Source: Dimorphilus gyrociliatus (Eukaryota > Animalia > Annelida). From it: a stretch of 64,000 nucleotides of DNA. Positions 28,657-39,500 of this stretch are shown one piece after another (position 1 is the first letter of the stretch; every line of letters starts with the position of its first letter). The DNA lies in assembly GCA_904063045.1 (NCBI GenBank), contig CAJFCJ010000004.1, positions 2,101,713 through 2,165,712 on the forward strand, read 5' to 3'. Below the pieces are notes generated by a model. It worked only from the letters and a program-made list of their open reading frames with translations, did not search any database and was not told where the DNA came from. The translations under genes were made by a program, and so were the position numbers.

Positions 28657-31600
28657 ATGGACGTGGAGGAATATAGAAAGAGAGGTTAGTAAAAGTAAGA
28701 AAAAGAAGAGAAAAAGAAAAATTAAAAGTTATATAATAAAGATAAAAATAGAGATTATCCAGAAAATAGAGGAAAAAATTGAGAAACGAAATAGAATTTT
28801 AGTTATTTCTTTAATTATCTTTTTAATAAAAGTAAATAATTATTTTATACATAAACTAAAAGAAAAGAACTTTGAATTTTTTATTAGAATTTTATGTTTC
28901 ACCGAGAAAAAGTTTCTTAAAATTAAAATATTCATCCATATTTAATTTTAGTCAAAGTATTTCGTCTTTATTTTAAACAAATAGGTACTCAATGAAATAA
29001 ACTGTGTGTAAAAGAACATATTTCTTTTATTATATACAATATTTACCAAGTATATACCGTATCTTATAATACAATAGATAACTAATGTAGTATATTGCGT
29101 ATCTGCATATCAATGCATCTAATAAGAACTTGTTTGAGTTTTTCAAGTTTGCTTTATACCATCATACGAGAAGTAAAACGTTTGCTTTGTTTATTTAAAT
29201 AAAATCTATAGAGAAAATTGCTTTGTTGCAAAAAATGCAATTACATGTATAGAACATATAACAAATATATATATATATATATACATTATATATATACAGT
29301 ATATATAAATAGTATATATATATATATATATATCAACCTACTCTATACGGTATATACTGTATATATATAGTGCCGAAAGCGTTTGTAAAAATGAGATGGC
29401 CAATTACAAGCTGTTTACTAAGCAGGTGATAAGGCGTGTTTTCTATCGAAGCATCTATTTCGGCTTCTATTATTTGTTGTATTGTTAAAAGAAAATCTAG
29501 TTTCGTTGTCATTTAGAGAAAAACATCTGGTAGAAACGAGCTTCTTTTGAAGTAATGCTTGAAACGGTTTTAACTAATGTGGTCAGCGGCGACGAAGTTA
29601 AGAATTAGCTTGATTAATTAGAACCTACAGGCTAAATGGAACATGCATTGCTTTAGGGTAGAACGACGCCTACTTAAATGTTGGTTTTGTTTAGCTTTGT
29701 CTGTCTTCTCCTTCCTAGAAATATCTATGGTTTTCGCAGAGTATACTAAGGACATTTTTTTAATTGAGCCTTTACAAACATATTTATTAATCTAATTTAC
29801 TTATTATACACTTCTTTAAAAGAGTAAAACAACTGGCCTAAAACCAAAATTAAAGAGAGATATTCTTTCAAATTATATCTCTTATGGTCAGAACGCTTTT
29901 TTCAAAGAATGGAATGAAATGGAAATACTGAATCTTTTCGGTGTATATATTTATATATGTGTGTATTCGTGTATTACTTTAATTAATAAGAATCATAAGA
30001 AAGCTAATAGTATTCCAGTTGAGTAAAGATTGTCAAATTTTAGCAAATAAGATAGTAATTAATATGGTATTTCTTATGTTATCTTTCGTTAGTTATAAAT
30101 TATTTTTGGAAATCGACCAATGACAAATATTACAGAAATATATATATATATATATAGATAAACGAAAAAAAATATCCTACTTAAACAAGTTTTTATCCAT
30201 TTCTAATAGAAATTAATCTCAAATTATTCTTTTCTTATAACAAACCAGAATGAATGAAAGAATTATGATAAATGTTTCAGTAGAACTTTACTCAACCAAA
30301 ATATTAAATATATTAAAAATATGATTATTAAAACCGATGATGTTACTTGAAAACTATTTATTATTTAGTCTAATCAATGGATGATTATTTCTTATGCTAT
30401 AACGCCACCTTTACAACGATATAAAATACAAGTACTTTAAGGGTTAAGTTTGCAAGTTTTTCAAGTTTACACTTAACGTTTCCCAATTATCGAATAACTT
30501 TTAGACTTAAAATACTAAATAAAATGTTATGGTTTAATTCTTACTTATCGTCACAGGAAAGGAAATGGTCGATTATATCGCCGACTATCTTATTAATATT
30601 AGACAACGTAATGTCTTCCCAGATGTAAAACCAGGATACATGCGAGATTTACTACCCGAGAAAGCCCCAATTAACGGAGAAAGTTGGCAAGAGATATTTA
30701 ACGACGTTGAGCGTGTCGTTATGCCTGGTGTAAGTAACCTCTGTAATAACTTGTTGTAGGTCACGAAACTGATGATAAACTTGACCAAATAATTAAATTT
30801 CTAAAAATAACTTAGAAATAGTATCTTAACTTTCTAGAAGAGCAGACAAAGAATCAATATTGTTAATTTGCAGTTTCTACCATTTAACGGATATTGAAAA
30901 AATGCATATATTTACAGAAACTTCTGTTTCTTCTTTTTTCTTTTTAAAGCTTTAAAATAATTGATTAGTAAAGATATATATAAAAAGAAAAGAAACGCAT
31001 TTTTCCTACTAATTTTAGTATTAAATGTTAACAAAAGAAAAGGAAAAATGCATTATCATGTAAGTACGTTTTGCCCCTGAAAGTAGAGAGAGGCTTCAAG
31101 TGATAATTGCTACTTTTACATGTCTAAATTAGTAATGTAGAAGAAGCACATGAGCTCGAAATGTCTAAAGCATATAAACAAATAATATAAAAACACAATT
31201 TTCTACTGCAATGATTTTTGCAAAAACTAAGACAGCGACAATTCCGGCTTAAAAACATTCCGCATCTTCCGATTTCTTTAAAAAAGTGCGCAATCATTTC
31301 CCGTCCCCTAAGCTTTAAAGGAGTATGTAGATATAATTGGAAAAACGACAAATCGAGTGTTTACCATCGCGAGCGTCTCTTCAACGTCGTTTGGTTTATG
31401 TATACAAATTCTTAGGGATATTGATTTGAAAGTGATATGGCATAGTCTCCGGCTTTCGATTCATCAATTTTTTTTTTTAACAACGCTTTCTTTAATAGAT
31501 TATTCTTTACTCTGCTTCTTAATTATAAAACTTTCATATGATAAGACATATATCTTTATATTGAAAATCAGCTTATTTCAATTTTTTAATACCACTCAAT

Positions 31601-34600
31601 CGAAATGAAGCATTTTTCAGAGTATGAGCTGAAGCAGATATGTGTTTATAGTATCCAATTTTGATCCGTGCCTAATCATATTAGATATCGTAAAGATATA
31701 TACAATAGTATAGAAAGACACACTAAGTCCCAATGACCTTGCTTAAACAAAGTATCTTTCTTTCCCTGAAGATAACACACTGGCAATCCCCGCATATGCA
31801 TGCCTACTTTCCGGCCTTGAACTCGTTTCCTTCACTACTCGGAGACATGCTGGCCGATGCAATTGGTTGTTTGGGCTTTACTTGGGTAGGATTTTTTAAT
31901 TGAAACCTGTTATACGCCGCTTCTAAGTATTAAATATATTGTAAATATACAAATTTTTAACTAAAGGCATCTAGCCCTGCTTGTACTGAATTGGAAATTA
32001 TTGTTATGGATTGGCTAGCAAAAATGATCGGGTTACCATCAGAATTTTGGCATTGTACAAATTCAAAGAAGAATGTTGTAGAGAAAATGGGAGGTGGTGT
32101 AATTCAAACAACCGCTAGTGAAGCTACTTTTGTTAGCCTCCTAGCTGCTAGGACATCAGCTATCAATAGGATGAAACAAGTTTGTAAGATGAAAAGTATC
32201 GAAGTAGATATTGCAGATATCAACTCAAGATTGGTAGCATATTGCTCTGATCAGGTAAGTTTTGACGTTTATCAATAGAATTTGAATTATATTTAGCAAC
32301 AAAGTTCTGTGCTAAAATTTGAATTAATTTGTTCTAAAGCGATTTCTAATTAAAGAAAGAGAAAAAGAGAAATTATTAGTTTCCTTATACTATCTAAAAA
32401 TTAATTTATATCGCCTCAGCTATATATTATTTAATTGTTTATTCCATTGATCACCTCCTTCAGTAAGTTATTTCCGGCGTTCGATAATTAGATTAAAGAT
32501 CATGGAGGTGACATCTCAATGTCGAGTGACAACGTCATCATTCCCTTTCGATTTCACTTTAAGAGTTCTATAAAACCTTTAATTATATTTTGTTTGTCTT
32601 TTGAAAAAACTATCCATTCGGTTTAATTTGTTTAATAGTTATATTAGCTACCAAACTAAAATCGAATGAAGAAAAATAACTCTTATCTGTCTAAAAAGGG
32701 ATAAAATAATTTATTTTCAGGCTCATTCATCTGTTGAAAAAGCAAGTCTTATTGGACTTGTAACTCTTCGACTGCTTAAAACCAAAGATGATCTCTCGCT
32801 GGACACTGATCATTTGAAAGAAGTGATTAGAGAAGATGTTCAAGACGGTCTTATACCTTTCTTTGTGAGTATATCTTATAGAGAATATTTTAACATTAAA
32901 TTGTTTAAATAATTAAAATTTCAGTTATGTGCAACTTTAGGAACAACAGGAGCTTGTGCATTTGACAATTTGGAACTTATCGGACCAATATGTTAAACAT
33001 TTTTTGTAATCATATAAATTATACAGTTTCTAAATTGGTTCTTTACAGGTGAAAAGGAGCAAATATGGTTGCATATTGATGCTGCTTACGCAGGCTCAGC
33101 ATTTGTTTGCCCTGAATATCGTCACTTTATGAAAGGAATTCAATTTGCGTCTTCCTTTGCGTTTAATCCATCGAAATGGTTAATGGTACATTTTGATTGT
33201 ACTGCGATGTGGTAAGAAAATATAAACATAGACTTTGAACTGAACGAACATGATTTTATGCATCGTTTAATTATATTTAAAGGGTTAAAGATAGTGGTGC
33301 ACTTCATAGAACATTCAATGTTGAACCTTTATATCTGAAGCATGAAAATATGGGTTTGTATTCATTTTTAAATTAAAATAAAGGAAATTTTAATCATCTT
33401 TCTTTTTCTCCGTGTCTTGTTCTCCTTATTATAATATGAAAAACAGGTGCAGCTATTGACTTTATGGTAAGTTTTTTTTAAGCAGAGGCCAAATTATCTT
33501 ATGAGTAACGTATAAAAATATTTTGAAAGCATTGGCAAATTCCGCTGAGTAAAAGATTCCGATCTTTGAAGCTGTGGTTCGTACTCAGAAGCTTCGGTGT
33601 CTCTGGACTTCAAAAGCACATTCGCCAGGTGACTAAAGAAAAGAAGAGAGAAAGAAACTCTCATATTTCCTTCTTAAAAATAAATAATTACTCTTATTGC
33701 TTCAATTAAATAGTTGTTTACTTTTGTGTAATGAAACTATATGTTTAGGGCGTACGACTAGCTAAACTCTTCGAGAAGTTGTTGTTAGAGGATGGAAGAT
33801 TCGAAATACCAGCTAAAAGACATCTTGGTATGGTTGTATTCAGATTAAAAGTAAGTTTAGCTATATTCCAAAATCTTCTTAAAAGACATCTTTTTAGAAT
33901 TAAATAGAAAATCTTAACAGAAAAATATTTAATATCATATTTGCCCTTTTCCTCCAATGATTAGGTGGTAGATACCCTATCAATTACGTGACATTTCCTA
34001 AGTCGCATTGAGTCACGTGACTGGTTATATAAGAGAAATATTTATTCCTTATTTAATTTATCTATTGTTTCTAGGGTGAAAATGAGCTGACAGAGAGATT
34101 GTTGAAGAAGTTGAACGGATCTGGAAAAATTCATATGGTTCCGGCGTCTTTTAAGGAAACTTATGTAATCAGATTTACAGTAACATCTCAATTCAGTAGC
34201 GAAGAGGATATTAGAAGAGACTTCAAAATTATTCAAGAAAAGGCTAAGAGTATTCTTAACGAAGCAACTTTGCCAGTTACAGATGAAGTTGAAGAGGAGA
34301 AACCAGAAACAGAGGTTCTGGAGAGAAAGAGGCCTATAAGTGCTCGTGGTGAAATACGTAAAGAGGCACTTAGAAATAGAAGAGACGAGTTTGGTCTTAG
34401 TTTGATGCTATCTAACGTTCCAATGTCACCAAAATTTGTCAATGGATCATTTTTGGCCTTATTCGACCTACAACAGGAAACTGTTGCTGAATACGCCAAG
34501 CTGTTTAGACGTCGACCGTCTACGACTTCAGGTCTAAAGAATCGGCATCTGCTGGCCTGGACGCCTCGAAATATGCGCTTACAGGATGGCAATAAAAAGT

Positions 34601-34839
34601 TTAGTAGTTTTGACTCGGTTTTACCTACAGAAAAAGCCGTTAAGCCGTTGAGACATAGGAACGACTCCCTCGATTCGAAAATTGAAAAAATATTCGAATC
34701 ATTCGATTCCAGTTCAGATCTAACTGCTGACGAACCGGACATGGAAAGTAACGGTCACGTGACTAGGTGCGACAGATGCGGTCATCTGGTGGCGAATTGT
34801 AACAAAGCTGCTGAGTGTCGAGTCGATGGAGAAATATAA
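28657..34839 (+). CDS. Hdc: Histidine decarboxylase (PLP-dependent group II decarboxylase), 677 aa, 12 exons
   Basis: Exons 28657-28684, 30557-30729, 31772-31885, 31967-32254, 32721-32864, 32925-32991, 33049-33211, 33283-33353, 33447-33466, 33530-33628, 33749-33850 and 34075-34839 (2034 nt, in frame). HDC-type signatures [16 protein letters not shown] and [13 protein letters not shown] (DDC has NPHKW, TDC has NPNKW), plus RFTVTSQF. Confidence 0.93.
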
Positions 34840-36584: not shown

Positions 36585-39500
36585 TCAAGTTTTTCTTGGG
36601 AAGCTAATTTTTAATAATTTCAATAATTCAACTTTTCTCTCTTCTTCGGATATTGCCGCCAGCATTTGCCATTGTTTTAAATTTTCCCTATTAAATTTAA
36701 ACAATTATATTTATACAGTATATAGATATTTATATTTTTAATATATTTGTTGTTTTGTCTTACTTTGCTCCAGTAACTATGGGTAAAGCATCAGGGAATA
36801 TTTCAGTTATTAATTCGTAGCATGGCAAACAAATGCCAACGAGAAATCCAACTTCTAATTGGGGAAGTTCATAATACTTTTCGCGATCCATCATTGTAAT
36901 GGTTCCCTCCTCCTTCTTCTTTTCGTCATCACCCTTTTACGATTAAAAATTATTGAACTATTAATAACTCAAAGTAAAATTTGAATAATCAAAAAATGAA
37001 ACAATACACTAAATTAAAAAGCATTCAATGGTTCGTTAACGTTTATTTATATTTAATTCGTAATAAAGATTGAATATCTATCTGCTAGAAAGAATTTAAT
37101 AAAACCACAATAAAAGAAAGAAGTTATATTACATCACGTTACTAGTCTAAATGAATTCTCTTTAAAAAAAAAAGAAAAAAAGTTCTAGAATGGTAAGGGA
37201 GAAATAATTATGTTATTGCAATTGCGCCATCTACCGTTTATCAATTTTCTAAAATAGCACATAAACATTCATGTTAAACCTTACCTACATACGTAAGTAG
37301 AAGAATAACATATACTTTAAATTTTGATAAATGCGTATAAAGGTAATAAGTACTATTAAAGAAATATGATGATGATCAAATGGCTTTGCAAACATAAGAT
37401 AATTACGTAAATTAACTACTAAAGTAGAGAGTAGATAGCTAACTCTGCTTGATAAATTTCATTAAAGTGGGACATAGAGCTAATAATTATGATTTTAGAA
37501 ATCAGTGTCGATTGAAACGTTTAGGAATTAGAAAAGTTTATTATCATAAACATTTTTAATAAATATTTATGATATGCATTTTTAAGCTGAAAAACAAAAA
37601 TCTCTTTGTTTCTCTTAAAAGAAGAGAAATTGTTTACAAGGCAAAAAATGAAACTTTATTGTTTTGTTTCATTTAAAAATATAAGGCAAAAGGCTTTTTC
37701 GTTCGGTTTTTTTTTTTTGGAAAAAAGAAAAGAAAAAATAAGAAAAAAAGATATATATATGTTAAATTGTGCTAAAAACCATTTAAGCACCTGTTGCCAA
37801 AATTCTTCCATTATAACATTTACTAATTTCAATTGAAGATTCCAAGGTTTGTACATACTGCACAAATCAGATGCGGTCATGCTTATTGCCATAAGCAAAA
37901 GGCTGCGCAATCACATTTGAAGATTAGAAATATGAAAAAAAAACCGATTAATCGCGGCGTCGCTCAGCATCTAACAACACTAACAAAATAGGACAGCATG
38001 CTCGGAAAAAATCACATGACATATTGCATATTGTAATTAGATTTGTTTTTGCGATTTCTAACCTGTTCCCAAAACTCTTCATATAATTCTTTCACTTGTT
38101 CTGCATGAATGTCCCAAGGTTTCATATTGGCACATAAATCACAAGATGTCATTGTGATAGCCAATACCAGTTTGCTGGATAGTATATGATATTTACAAAG
38201 TATATTTAAATGATGATGATAATATATATATATGTATAAATATATACAGTATATGTATATAATATAAATATCTGAGATCTATTAAAATATGATTAAATAT
38301 AAAACGAGATGCTGAGCAAATATGCGCTTTTTATACAAGTATTGTAAACTAACCGACAATTTTCATTTTGCCAAGAAAATGTTCCTTCGTCAATGTTGTT
38401 CCTTAATTGGGATTTATTTGGAAAGAACAGTGCTAAGTCTGTAGCTAAGATACAATGCTTTATATTTGATAAAATTTGTCTGTACTCGTCCGATGATAAA
38501 GTATTGAATATATTATGGCCGTCATGCTGTAATTGCAAAAAAATAAAGTAAATAAAAGACATTTCTATATAAAATACATTTTAGCTCGGAATTTATTTTA
38601 AGTCGAATTTTGCAAATACCAAAGATATTATATCAATATAATCGGTCGTAAAACTAAAGCATACTTGTTATATCTGCCTTTTTCTCGCTTTTCATAAAAA
38701 CTACACTTTTATTTTTTATTACAGCCGAAAAGGAAATAAGATAGAATTCAAATGATACTCGAACTGAAGCCCGTGAAAAAAAAGGCTTTTATTTCAATTT
38801 TATCTACACTATAGTCTGTTCCAATTGTTTTTTAGAGTACATTTTTTAATATGTATCCTCAGTGTAAAGTAATACGCCGCTATATCTTTTGTATACGTTG
38901 TTTTTTTTCCGTATAGTGTATATACACAGTACACACGTAGATATATAAAAATGGAAGATATACAGTATATATATATATATGTATATGTATACAGTATTTT
39001 TTCTATATCTAATATTTGTACAGTTTATTGAATAATTGTAAATACCTGTAAAATGGCGACAGTTTGATTGAAATGGTGATGCTCCATTGTTGAAGTACTG
39101 TATATGGCTGCTAATGGGGAAGAACTTTTGACCATAAACGAATTGGTTTTACCTCGATGATCTAAATCATGACATAGTGAACCAACAAACAAACCGATTT
39201 TCTGTAATAATAATGTCAAGGACGATAGTTGAATAGATAAAAAAGAAAATTTTTGAGTTATTATACTTCAATCAAAGTAAATTGATTATTCGTATTCTTC
39301 AAAATCGTATACATTGCATGGGCGACACTAAATGCGTGCTCCCAATTGTGATAAGGTACATTTCTGTAGTTTTTCCTGACAGTTAAGGTAAATCTCATGA
39401 GTGTTTTCGCATCGAATCTATAGGGAGGGAAGGAAGAGAGGATTAAAAGAGCCATTAATCAATTTATTATAGTGTCATTTATCAAAGAATGATTCAGAAA

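Follow-up and report, generated by a model that had tools for sequence, protein, structure and literature searches.

Predicted intron–intron pairing around a twin exon of a PDE10-type phosphodiesterase gene in the annelid Dimorphilus gyrociliatus

Base pairing within the pre-mRNA is an established means of steering mutually exclusive exons in insect Dscam1, 14-3-3 xi, Mhc and serpent (srp) and in mammalian ATE1 and DNM1 (PMC11802352, PMC7797038). In the exon 4.1/4.2 cluster of Drosophila srp, four conserved intron elements form an upstream pairing (I1-I2) and a downstream pairing (I2-I3) (Yue et al. 2016, PMC4691838). When the upstream pairing is disrupted, the distal exon 4.2 is used less; compensating mutations bring its use back, and the level of exon use follows the strength of the pairing (PMC4691838). 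Here we analyse a stretch of 64,000 nucleotides from the annelid Dimorphilus gyrociliatus (contig CAJFCJ010000004.1, positions 2,101,713 to 2,165,712; hereafter the window), which holds a PDE10-type phosphodiesterase gene with two tandem homologous exons, A and B. The introns on either side of exon A are joined by a predicted 13-bp helix that encloses this exon and, on balance, probably favours joining of the upstream exon to exon B with skipping of exon A. Our full-text literature searches returned no report of such pairing in annelids, rotifers or PDE10-type genes, and a 2024 review of the field (PMC11802352) contains no annelid or rotifer example.

The exon pair and its helix

The host gene lies on the minus strand at about 46270-36600 and encodes a protein of GAF-GAF-PDE architecture, whose orthologues in other animals carry the NCBI label 'probable pde-5'. 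The exons, introns and helix arms of the region are as follows, in the order of transcription and in window coordinates.

38354-38526, minus strand: constitutive upstream exon, 173 nt, part of the PDE catalytic domain; donor GT at 38353-38352
38175-38353, minus strand: intron I1, upstream exon to exon A, 179 nt, GC 20%
38307-38319, minus strand: arm 1 (upstream 'docking' arm) in I1, RNA UUGCUCAGCAUCU, with the 11-nt exact core GCUCAGCAUCU at 38317-38307
38063-38174, minus strand: alternative exon A, 112 nt, AG/GT sites; 37 residues including the metal-binding Asp segment
37903-38062, minus strand: intron I2, exon A to exon B, 160 nt, GC 35%
37960-37972, minus strand: arm 2 ('selector' arm) in I2, RNA AGAUGCUGAGCGA, with the core AGAUGCUGAGC at 37972-37962
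37791-37902, minus strand: alternative exon B, 112 nt, AG/GT sites, same phase as exon A
36934-37790, minus strand: intron I3, exon B to downstream exon, 857 nt, GC 24%
36762-36933, minus strand: constitutive downstream exon, beginning GDDEK

The boundary of the upstream exon is common to many animal orthologues. Exons A and B share 60% of their nucleotides and 17 of the 37 residues of their homologous protein segments. They are arranged in tandem and are equal in size and phase, a feature expected of docking/selector clusters. Because 112 nt is not a multiple of three, a transcript that includes both exons or neither is shifted in frame, and mutual exclusion of A and B is already enforced by the reading frame.

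An initial annotation of this DNA had pointed to a perfect 11-nt inverted repeat around exon A, and the repeat is indeed present. There are exactly two occurrences of AGATGCTGAGC in the window, one on the plus strand (38307-38317) and one on the minus strand (37962-37972), compared with 0.01 matches expected from shuffling. The core is lengthened by a U-G pair (38318/37961) and a U-A pair (38319/37960), as had been proposed, which gives a helix of 13 bp. Arm 1 begins 36 nt past the upstream donor, exactly as annotated, and between the end of arm 2 and the exon B acceptor there are 59 nt, where about 60 nt had been given. The description of the arms as GC-rich islands also holds; both occupy the GC-richest spots of introns that are otherwise AT-rich, and the helix itself is compact, free of mismatches and 46% GC. 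With one arm in each intron flanking exon A, the layout is that of an I1xI2 upstream pairing, and both this placement and the predicted fold support the view that the helix would leave exon A in a loop and set the upstream donor close to exon B.

In ViennaRNA predictions the helix is part of the minimum-energy structure. The pair probability of its core is about 1.0 in contexts of 451 nt (I1, exon A and I2), 736 nt (upstream exon through exon B) and 1593 nt (extended to the end of I3), and partition-function folds give the positions of arm 1 pair probabilities of 0.73-1.0. In a transcript that does not yet contain arm 2, about half of arm 1 is predicted to be unpaired on average.

Of 1000 dinucleotide shuffles, 20 (2%) contain an exactly complementary stretch of at least 11 nt between I1 and I2. 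As this measure of run length ignores the GC-rich character of the arms within AT-rich introns, helices were scored by nearest-neighbour stacking energies from ViennaRNA, in a search for ungapped helices with 1x1 mismatches allowed; the search replaced RNAduplex, which yielded unrealistically long multi-loop duplexes when applied to whole introns. The 13-bp helix has an energy of -24.9, a value equalled in 1 of 500 shuffled intron pairs in one run and in none of 3000 in another (z = -5.6). The best helix of the shuffled pairs averages about -13, and the second-best helix between the actual I1 and I2, at -11.8, has less than half the energy of the first. A shuffle-free scan of the minus strand of the window for helices spanning 30-700 nt found eight of equal or better energy, most of them long, imperfect and of low complexity; at this density about 0.005 such helices are expected for the I1/I2 pair.

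In the 77.9-Mb genome the 11-mer is found 16 times, a number so small that origin of the arms from a repeat or transposon is ruled out. No Rfam family and no intronic snoRNA was found at either arm. Elsewhere on the minus strand of the window, compact near-perfect local helices occur at 15868-15851/15733-15716 (18 bp) and at 59830-59818/59136-59124 (13 bp).

Ancestry of the exons and helices in rotifers

A tblastn search with the A and B peptides against 66 contigs from other animals found two or three tandem copies of the exon in 30 of them, and every copy is 112 nt long with AG/GT sites. Judged from these comparisons, the A/B exon pair is ancient. The second copy bears the exon B signature DLC-S/A-M-Y/F-KPW ... 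IM-E/D-EFW, which is present in bryozoan-like, bivalve-like and rotifer-like contigs as well as in annotated mollusc, nemertean and annelid proteins. An A-type signature is common to exon A and the contigs L031 and L062; the distinctive CAN-KPWD-H of exon A recurs in L031, which argues for selection on both exons. Among annotated proteins, NCBI isoforms of Mytilus edulis contain either the A-type segment (P0140, X19) or the B-type segment (P0130, X9) between identical flanks, and Haliotis species have A-type and B-type alternatives in the same manner.

Closer relatives of the locus itself were sought with its open reading frames (ORFs). A word search with the ORF covering the upstream exon and arm 1 gave best identities of 54-69%, the ORF containing exon B matched just oysters and two contigs, and a metagenome scan gave a partial match of at most 72% identity. 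The best of these relatives, 54-72% identical in the flanking exon, have introns that cannot be aligned. A second allele, haplotig or copy of the region was not found within the genome itself.

The helix-versus-shuffle test was applied to about 21 non-redundant loci carrying the exon pair. With the exception of one clade, the shuffle counts are evenly spread among these loci, which indicates that the test is not over-generous. The excepted clade is bdelloid-rotifer-like. Its cDNA-like member L042 has a full-length ORF 79% identical to the Didymodactylos carnosus protein P0210, and the difference between the two is concentrated in the alternative exon, with L042 carrying the first copy and P0210 the second.

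Within this clade, the loci L040, L044 and L050 have an I1xI2 helix of 17-29 bp with the core GGUGAUAGUGC/GCACUAUCACC, matched in 0-1 of 200 shuffles. An I2xI3 helix is present in 7/7 species-level rotifer-like contigs, likewise with 0-1 of 200 shuffles as good; it is formed by CUCUCUCUUGCUCU/AGAGCAAGAGAGAG in one subclade and by UCUGUCUCUCU/AGAGAGACAGA in the other, and the first subclade has an additional helix, AAGAAAGCAGCA/UGCUGCUUUCUU. RNAalifold applied to the three long-intron rotifer species recovers the I1xI2 helix together with two outer I1xI2 helices, and counts pairs that persist despite two-sided changes (for example at alignment columns 121/779, 129/772 and 224/695). Since the rotifer introns can be aligned between species, part of this conservation reflects relatedness; the complementarity and the compensating changes do not.

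The box AAGAAAGCAGCA takes a central place in the rotifer loci (L040 1180-1196, L044 838-849, L050 4792-4813). It can pair with a box in I1 directly ahead of the first alternative exon, a pairing that RNAalifold also gives, and with a box in I3 after the second alternative exon, and thus has two alternative partners. The order of the rotifer elements is interleaved (crossing), as in Drosophila serpent.

Several further observations concern the same exons. In the downstream intron of the rotifer-like loci, UGCAUGC is conserved. The metatranscriptome-like sequence L029 (340-854) looks partly spliced, with the upstream exon joined to the first copy, the intron between the copies kept, and the second copy joined to the downstream exon. 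The downstream exon (GD-E-K...) is itself duplicated in some lineages, including the JGI contig L001 (3083-3139 and 3399-3482) and bivalves. Its oyster versions (P0131 and P0148 versus P0139) differ at the nucleotide-recognising position, with SQVGF versus LEVGF, and the window holds the glutamate version alone (ELPQLEVGF, from 36933 downward).

The GAF region of the window's PDE gene contains another candidate pair of twin exons, at 43575-43451 (125 nt) and 42677-42535 (143 nt) on the minus strand. Both members have AG/GT sites and homologous peptides, and each is 2 nt over a multiple of three; UGCAUG at 43447-43442 directly follows the donor of the first. A neighbouring gene at 30565-34839 on the plus strand converges on the PDE gene. 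Read by eye, its ORFs suggest a putative pyridoxal-dependent decarboxylase of aromatic amino acids or histidine that carries a long C-terminal tail.

A probable bias towards exon B and its alternatives

According to the mechanism we propose, the helix would close around exon A once arm 2 has been transcribed, and the exon B acceptor, 451 nt from the upstream donor along the chain, would come within about 95 nt of it plus the stem. The distal exon B would then be joined to the upstream exon, and the proximal exon A skipped. In this way the helix would offset the head start of the first-transcribed exon A in an animal tuned to very short introns. The median intron of D. gyrociliatus is 66 bp and its short introns are removed more efficiently (PMC7854359), so a shortening of the distance should matter in this species.

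The initial annotation had called the helix the switch that selects exon B. The helix is real, dominates the predicted fold and has an srp-like topology, and to this extent the proposal stands; 'switch' is too strong a word. As exclusivity is given by the reading frame, the helix is best seen as setting the A:B ratio, and since its topology is that of the srp upstream pairing we read it, by analogy, as a probable bias-setter towards exon B. We infer that it forms in vivo, favours exon B and is regulated. The annotation had also likened the arrangement to the docking/selector switches of insect genes. A switch of the Dscam type is not what we find, because arm 1 has a single selector and no second one competes for it.

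Other elements near the helix could take part. Two short segments that pair in the predicted fold, and two longer ones with exact complementarity between I2 and I3, are listed here.

38323-38327, minus strand: candidate outer helix arm GCGCA, pairing with UGCGC in the predicted fold
37905-37909, minus strand: its partner UGCGC, 2 nt short of the exon B acceptor AG
37935-37947, minus strand: candidate downstream-pairing arm UCGG+U9 in I2, a 13-nt exact complement to I3
37703-37715, minus strand: its partner A9+CCGA in I3; the pair would bracket exon B

The 5-bp GCGCA/UGCGC helix is predicted to stack outside the main helix and would bring in or mask the 3' splice site of exon B, a weak suggestion made post hoc. 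For UCGG+U9/A9+CCGA, a complementary run of at least 13 nt is found in 13 of 1000 shuffles (p ~0.013), its energy of -16.5 is not significant, and 64 of 500 shuffles do as well as the best I2xI3 helix of the window. The UCGG+U9/A9+CCGA pairing might represent a weak equivalent of serpent's 'downstream pairing'. The 'weaker AGCAUGCUG' that had been annotated nearby in the same intron does have a pairing, but one of merely 6 bp (CAGCAU/AUGCUG, -10.3). Inside AGCAUGCUG lies GCAUG, a Rbfox-type word at 38001-37997 on the minus strand, 60 nt past exon A and 25 nt upstream of arm 2. It is the sole copy in the four introns around the twin exons and may be bound by a protein instead of serving as a pairing arm.

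Several results weigh against a role of the helix in exon choice. It is only 13 bp long, and in a 2-kb fold its probability drops to 0.33 in competition with a broken 3+5-bp pairing that lies further upstream; this alternative partner of arm 1 (38674-38685) we judge to be an artefact of global folding. Neither a second selector for arm 1 nor a second partner for arm 2 was found, all alternatives being 6 bp long or weaker than -12 and the next-best partners of arm 1 reaching -11.8 or weaker. The elements of the window follow one another as arm 1, exon A, arm 2, U9 box, exon B and A9 box with no crossing. The weak downstream candidate is situated 3' of arm 2, so that both pairings could coexist. 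The window-wide helix scan shows no strong helix flanking the GAF-region twin pair of the same gene. In bryozoan-like, bivalve-like and crustacean-like loci and in the loci L031 and L035 the exon pair is retained, and none of them has a significant helix. A helix common to all phyla at these exons is thereby ruled out, significance being limited to the window and the rotifer clade, and the helix is not needed for mutual exclusion as such. Finally, the case was picked out of very many windows, so that some selection bias remains.

The last two points also feed the most serious alternative, that GC-rich islands happen to match and the complementarity has no effect on splicing, as do the 2% of shuffled intron pairs with an exact run of at least 11 nt and the eight helices of equal or better energy on one strand of the 64-kb window. 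We nevertheless regard chance as the less likely reading. The energy of the helix is reached by 1 of 3500 shuffles, and in being compact, perfect and 46% GC it is unlike the long, imperfect, low-complexity helices of the background. It brackets exactly one of the twin exons, in a topology proven in srp, and the orthologous rotifer loci have conserved helices at the same places.

The helix might also form and lead mainly to something other than exon B joining: a circle of exon A, plain skipping of A followed by decay, or masking of the exon B acceptor with the help of GCGCA/UGCGC. Inverted repeats in flanking introns are a classic trigger of exon circularisation. They are also known to cause exon loop-out (PMC11802352), and in the predicted fold just 2 nt separate the outer helix from the exon B acceptor AG. 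However, 112 nt is very small for an exon circle, the outer helix has just 5 bp, skipping of A without use of B would shift the frame, and the same topology in srp raises use of the distal exon. An outcome of this kind seems to us improbable.

That the arms are read as sequence, as two opposite-orientation copies of a protein motif or as neighbours of GCAUG, is most improbable, for although both contain the interrupted palindrome GCUNAGC and GCAUG lies close upstream of arm 2, on the RNA they are reverse complements that one single-strand-binding protein would not both see, their complementarity spans all 13 positions and so goes past the palindromic core, and the 16 genomic copies give no sign of enrichment.

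Relation to known systems

A helix with a bias towards exon B would extend RNA-structure-guided choice of exclusive exons to annelids and, by the comparison made here, to rotifers. As the exons encode part of the catalytic pocket, it would set the ratio of two forms of the phosphodiesterase. The module measures about 450 nt and belongs to a culturable animal with a small genome, which would make it an easy system for mutation and rescue. Lineages that share this exon pair differ in whether helices accompany it, which amounts to a natural experiment on when helices are needed.

The window and rotifer data together raise a broader possibility, which we put forward tentatively. An ancient exon pair in the catalytic pocket of spiralian PDE10-type enzymes may be steered by lineage-specific helices that arose independently in the annelid, with one strong upstream pairing, and in bdelloid rotifers, with a serpent-like set that includes a competing central box. 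These would be the first examples of the docking/selector type outside arthropods and vertebrates, and in compact genomes they would act by reducing the effective length of the long 'skip' intron for a spliceosome tuned to about 66 nt.

The helix of the window has its proven parallel in srp, where, in a cluster of two exons, the intron after the constitutive exon likewise pairs with the intron between the variants (stem I) and loops out the proximal exon. The second pairing of srp is also proven and interleaves with the first, so that the two compete or form a pseudoknot; the downstream candidate of the window is weak and does not cross the upstream helix. The srp elements are conserved across Drosophila, whereas the helix described here was examined in this one genome. 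In layout the rotifer orthologues come much closer to srp than the window does.

The Dscam1 exon 6, 14-3-3 xi and Mhc clusters resemble the window in that a site near a constitutive exon pairs with a site upstream of a variable exon (PMC11802352). In those clusters several selectors compete for one docking site, whereas the window has a single selector and an exclusivity based on the reading frame. Exon loop-out of the kind seen in Alu-mediated skipping, FGFR1 and DNM1 is similar in another respect, as complementary sequences in the flanking introns enclose an exon and promote its skipping (PMC11802352). The repeats known from such cases are usually long and transposon-derived; the arms in the window are 13 nt long, unique in the genome and placed at a choice between twin exons.

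Outside arthropods, human ATE1 exons 7a/7b form a two-exon exclusive pair with short, conserved, complementary intronic boxes (Kalinina et al. 2021, PMC7797038). There, R1 and R4 compete for the central R3 and a pairing over 30 kb sets the bias (PMC7797038), a competition that the window lacks. In contrast, the rotifer loci, with their competing central box AAGAAAGCAGCA complementary to boxes in I1 and I3, are more similar to ATE1 in this respect.

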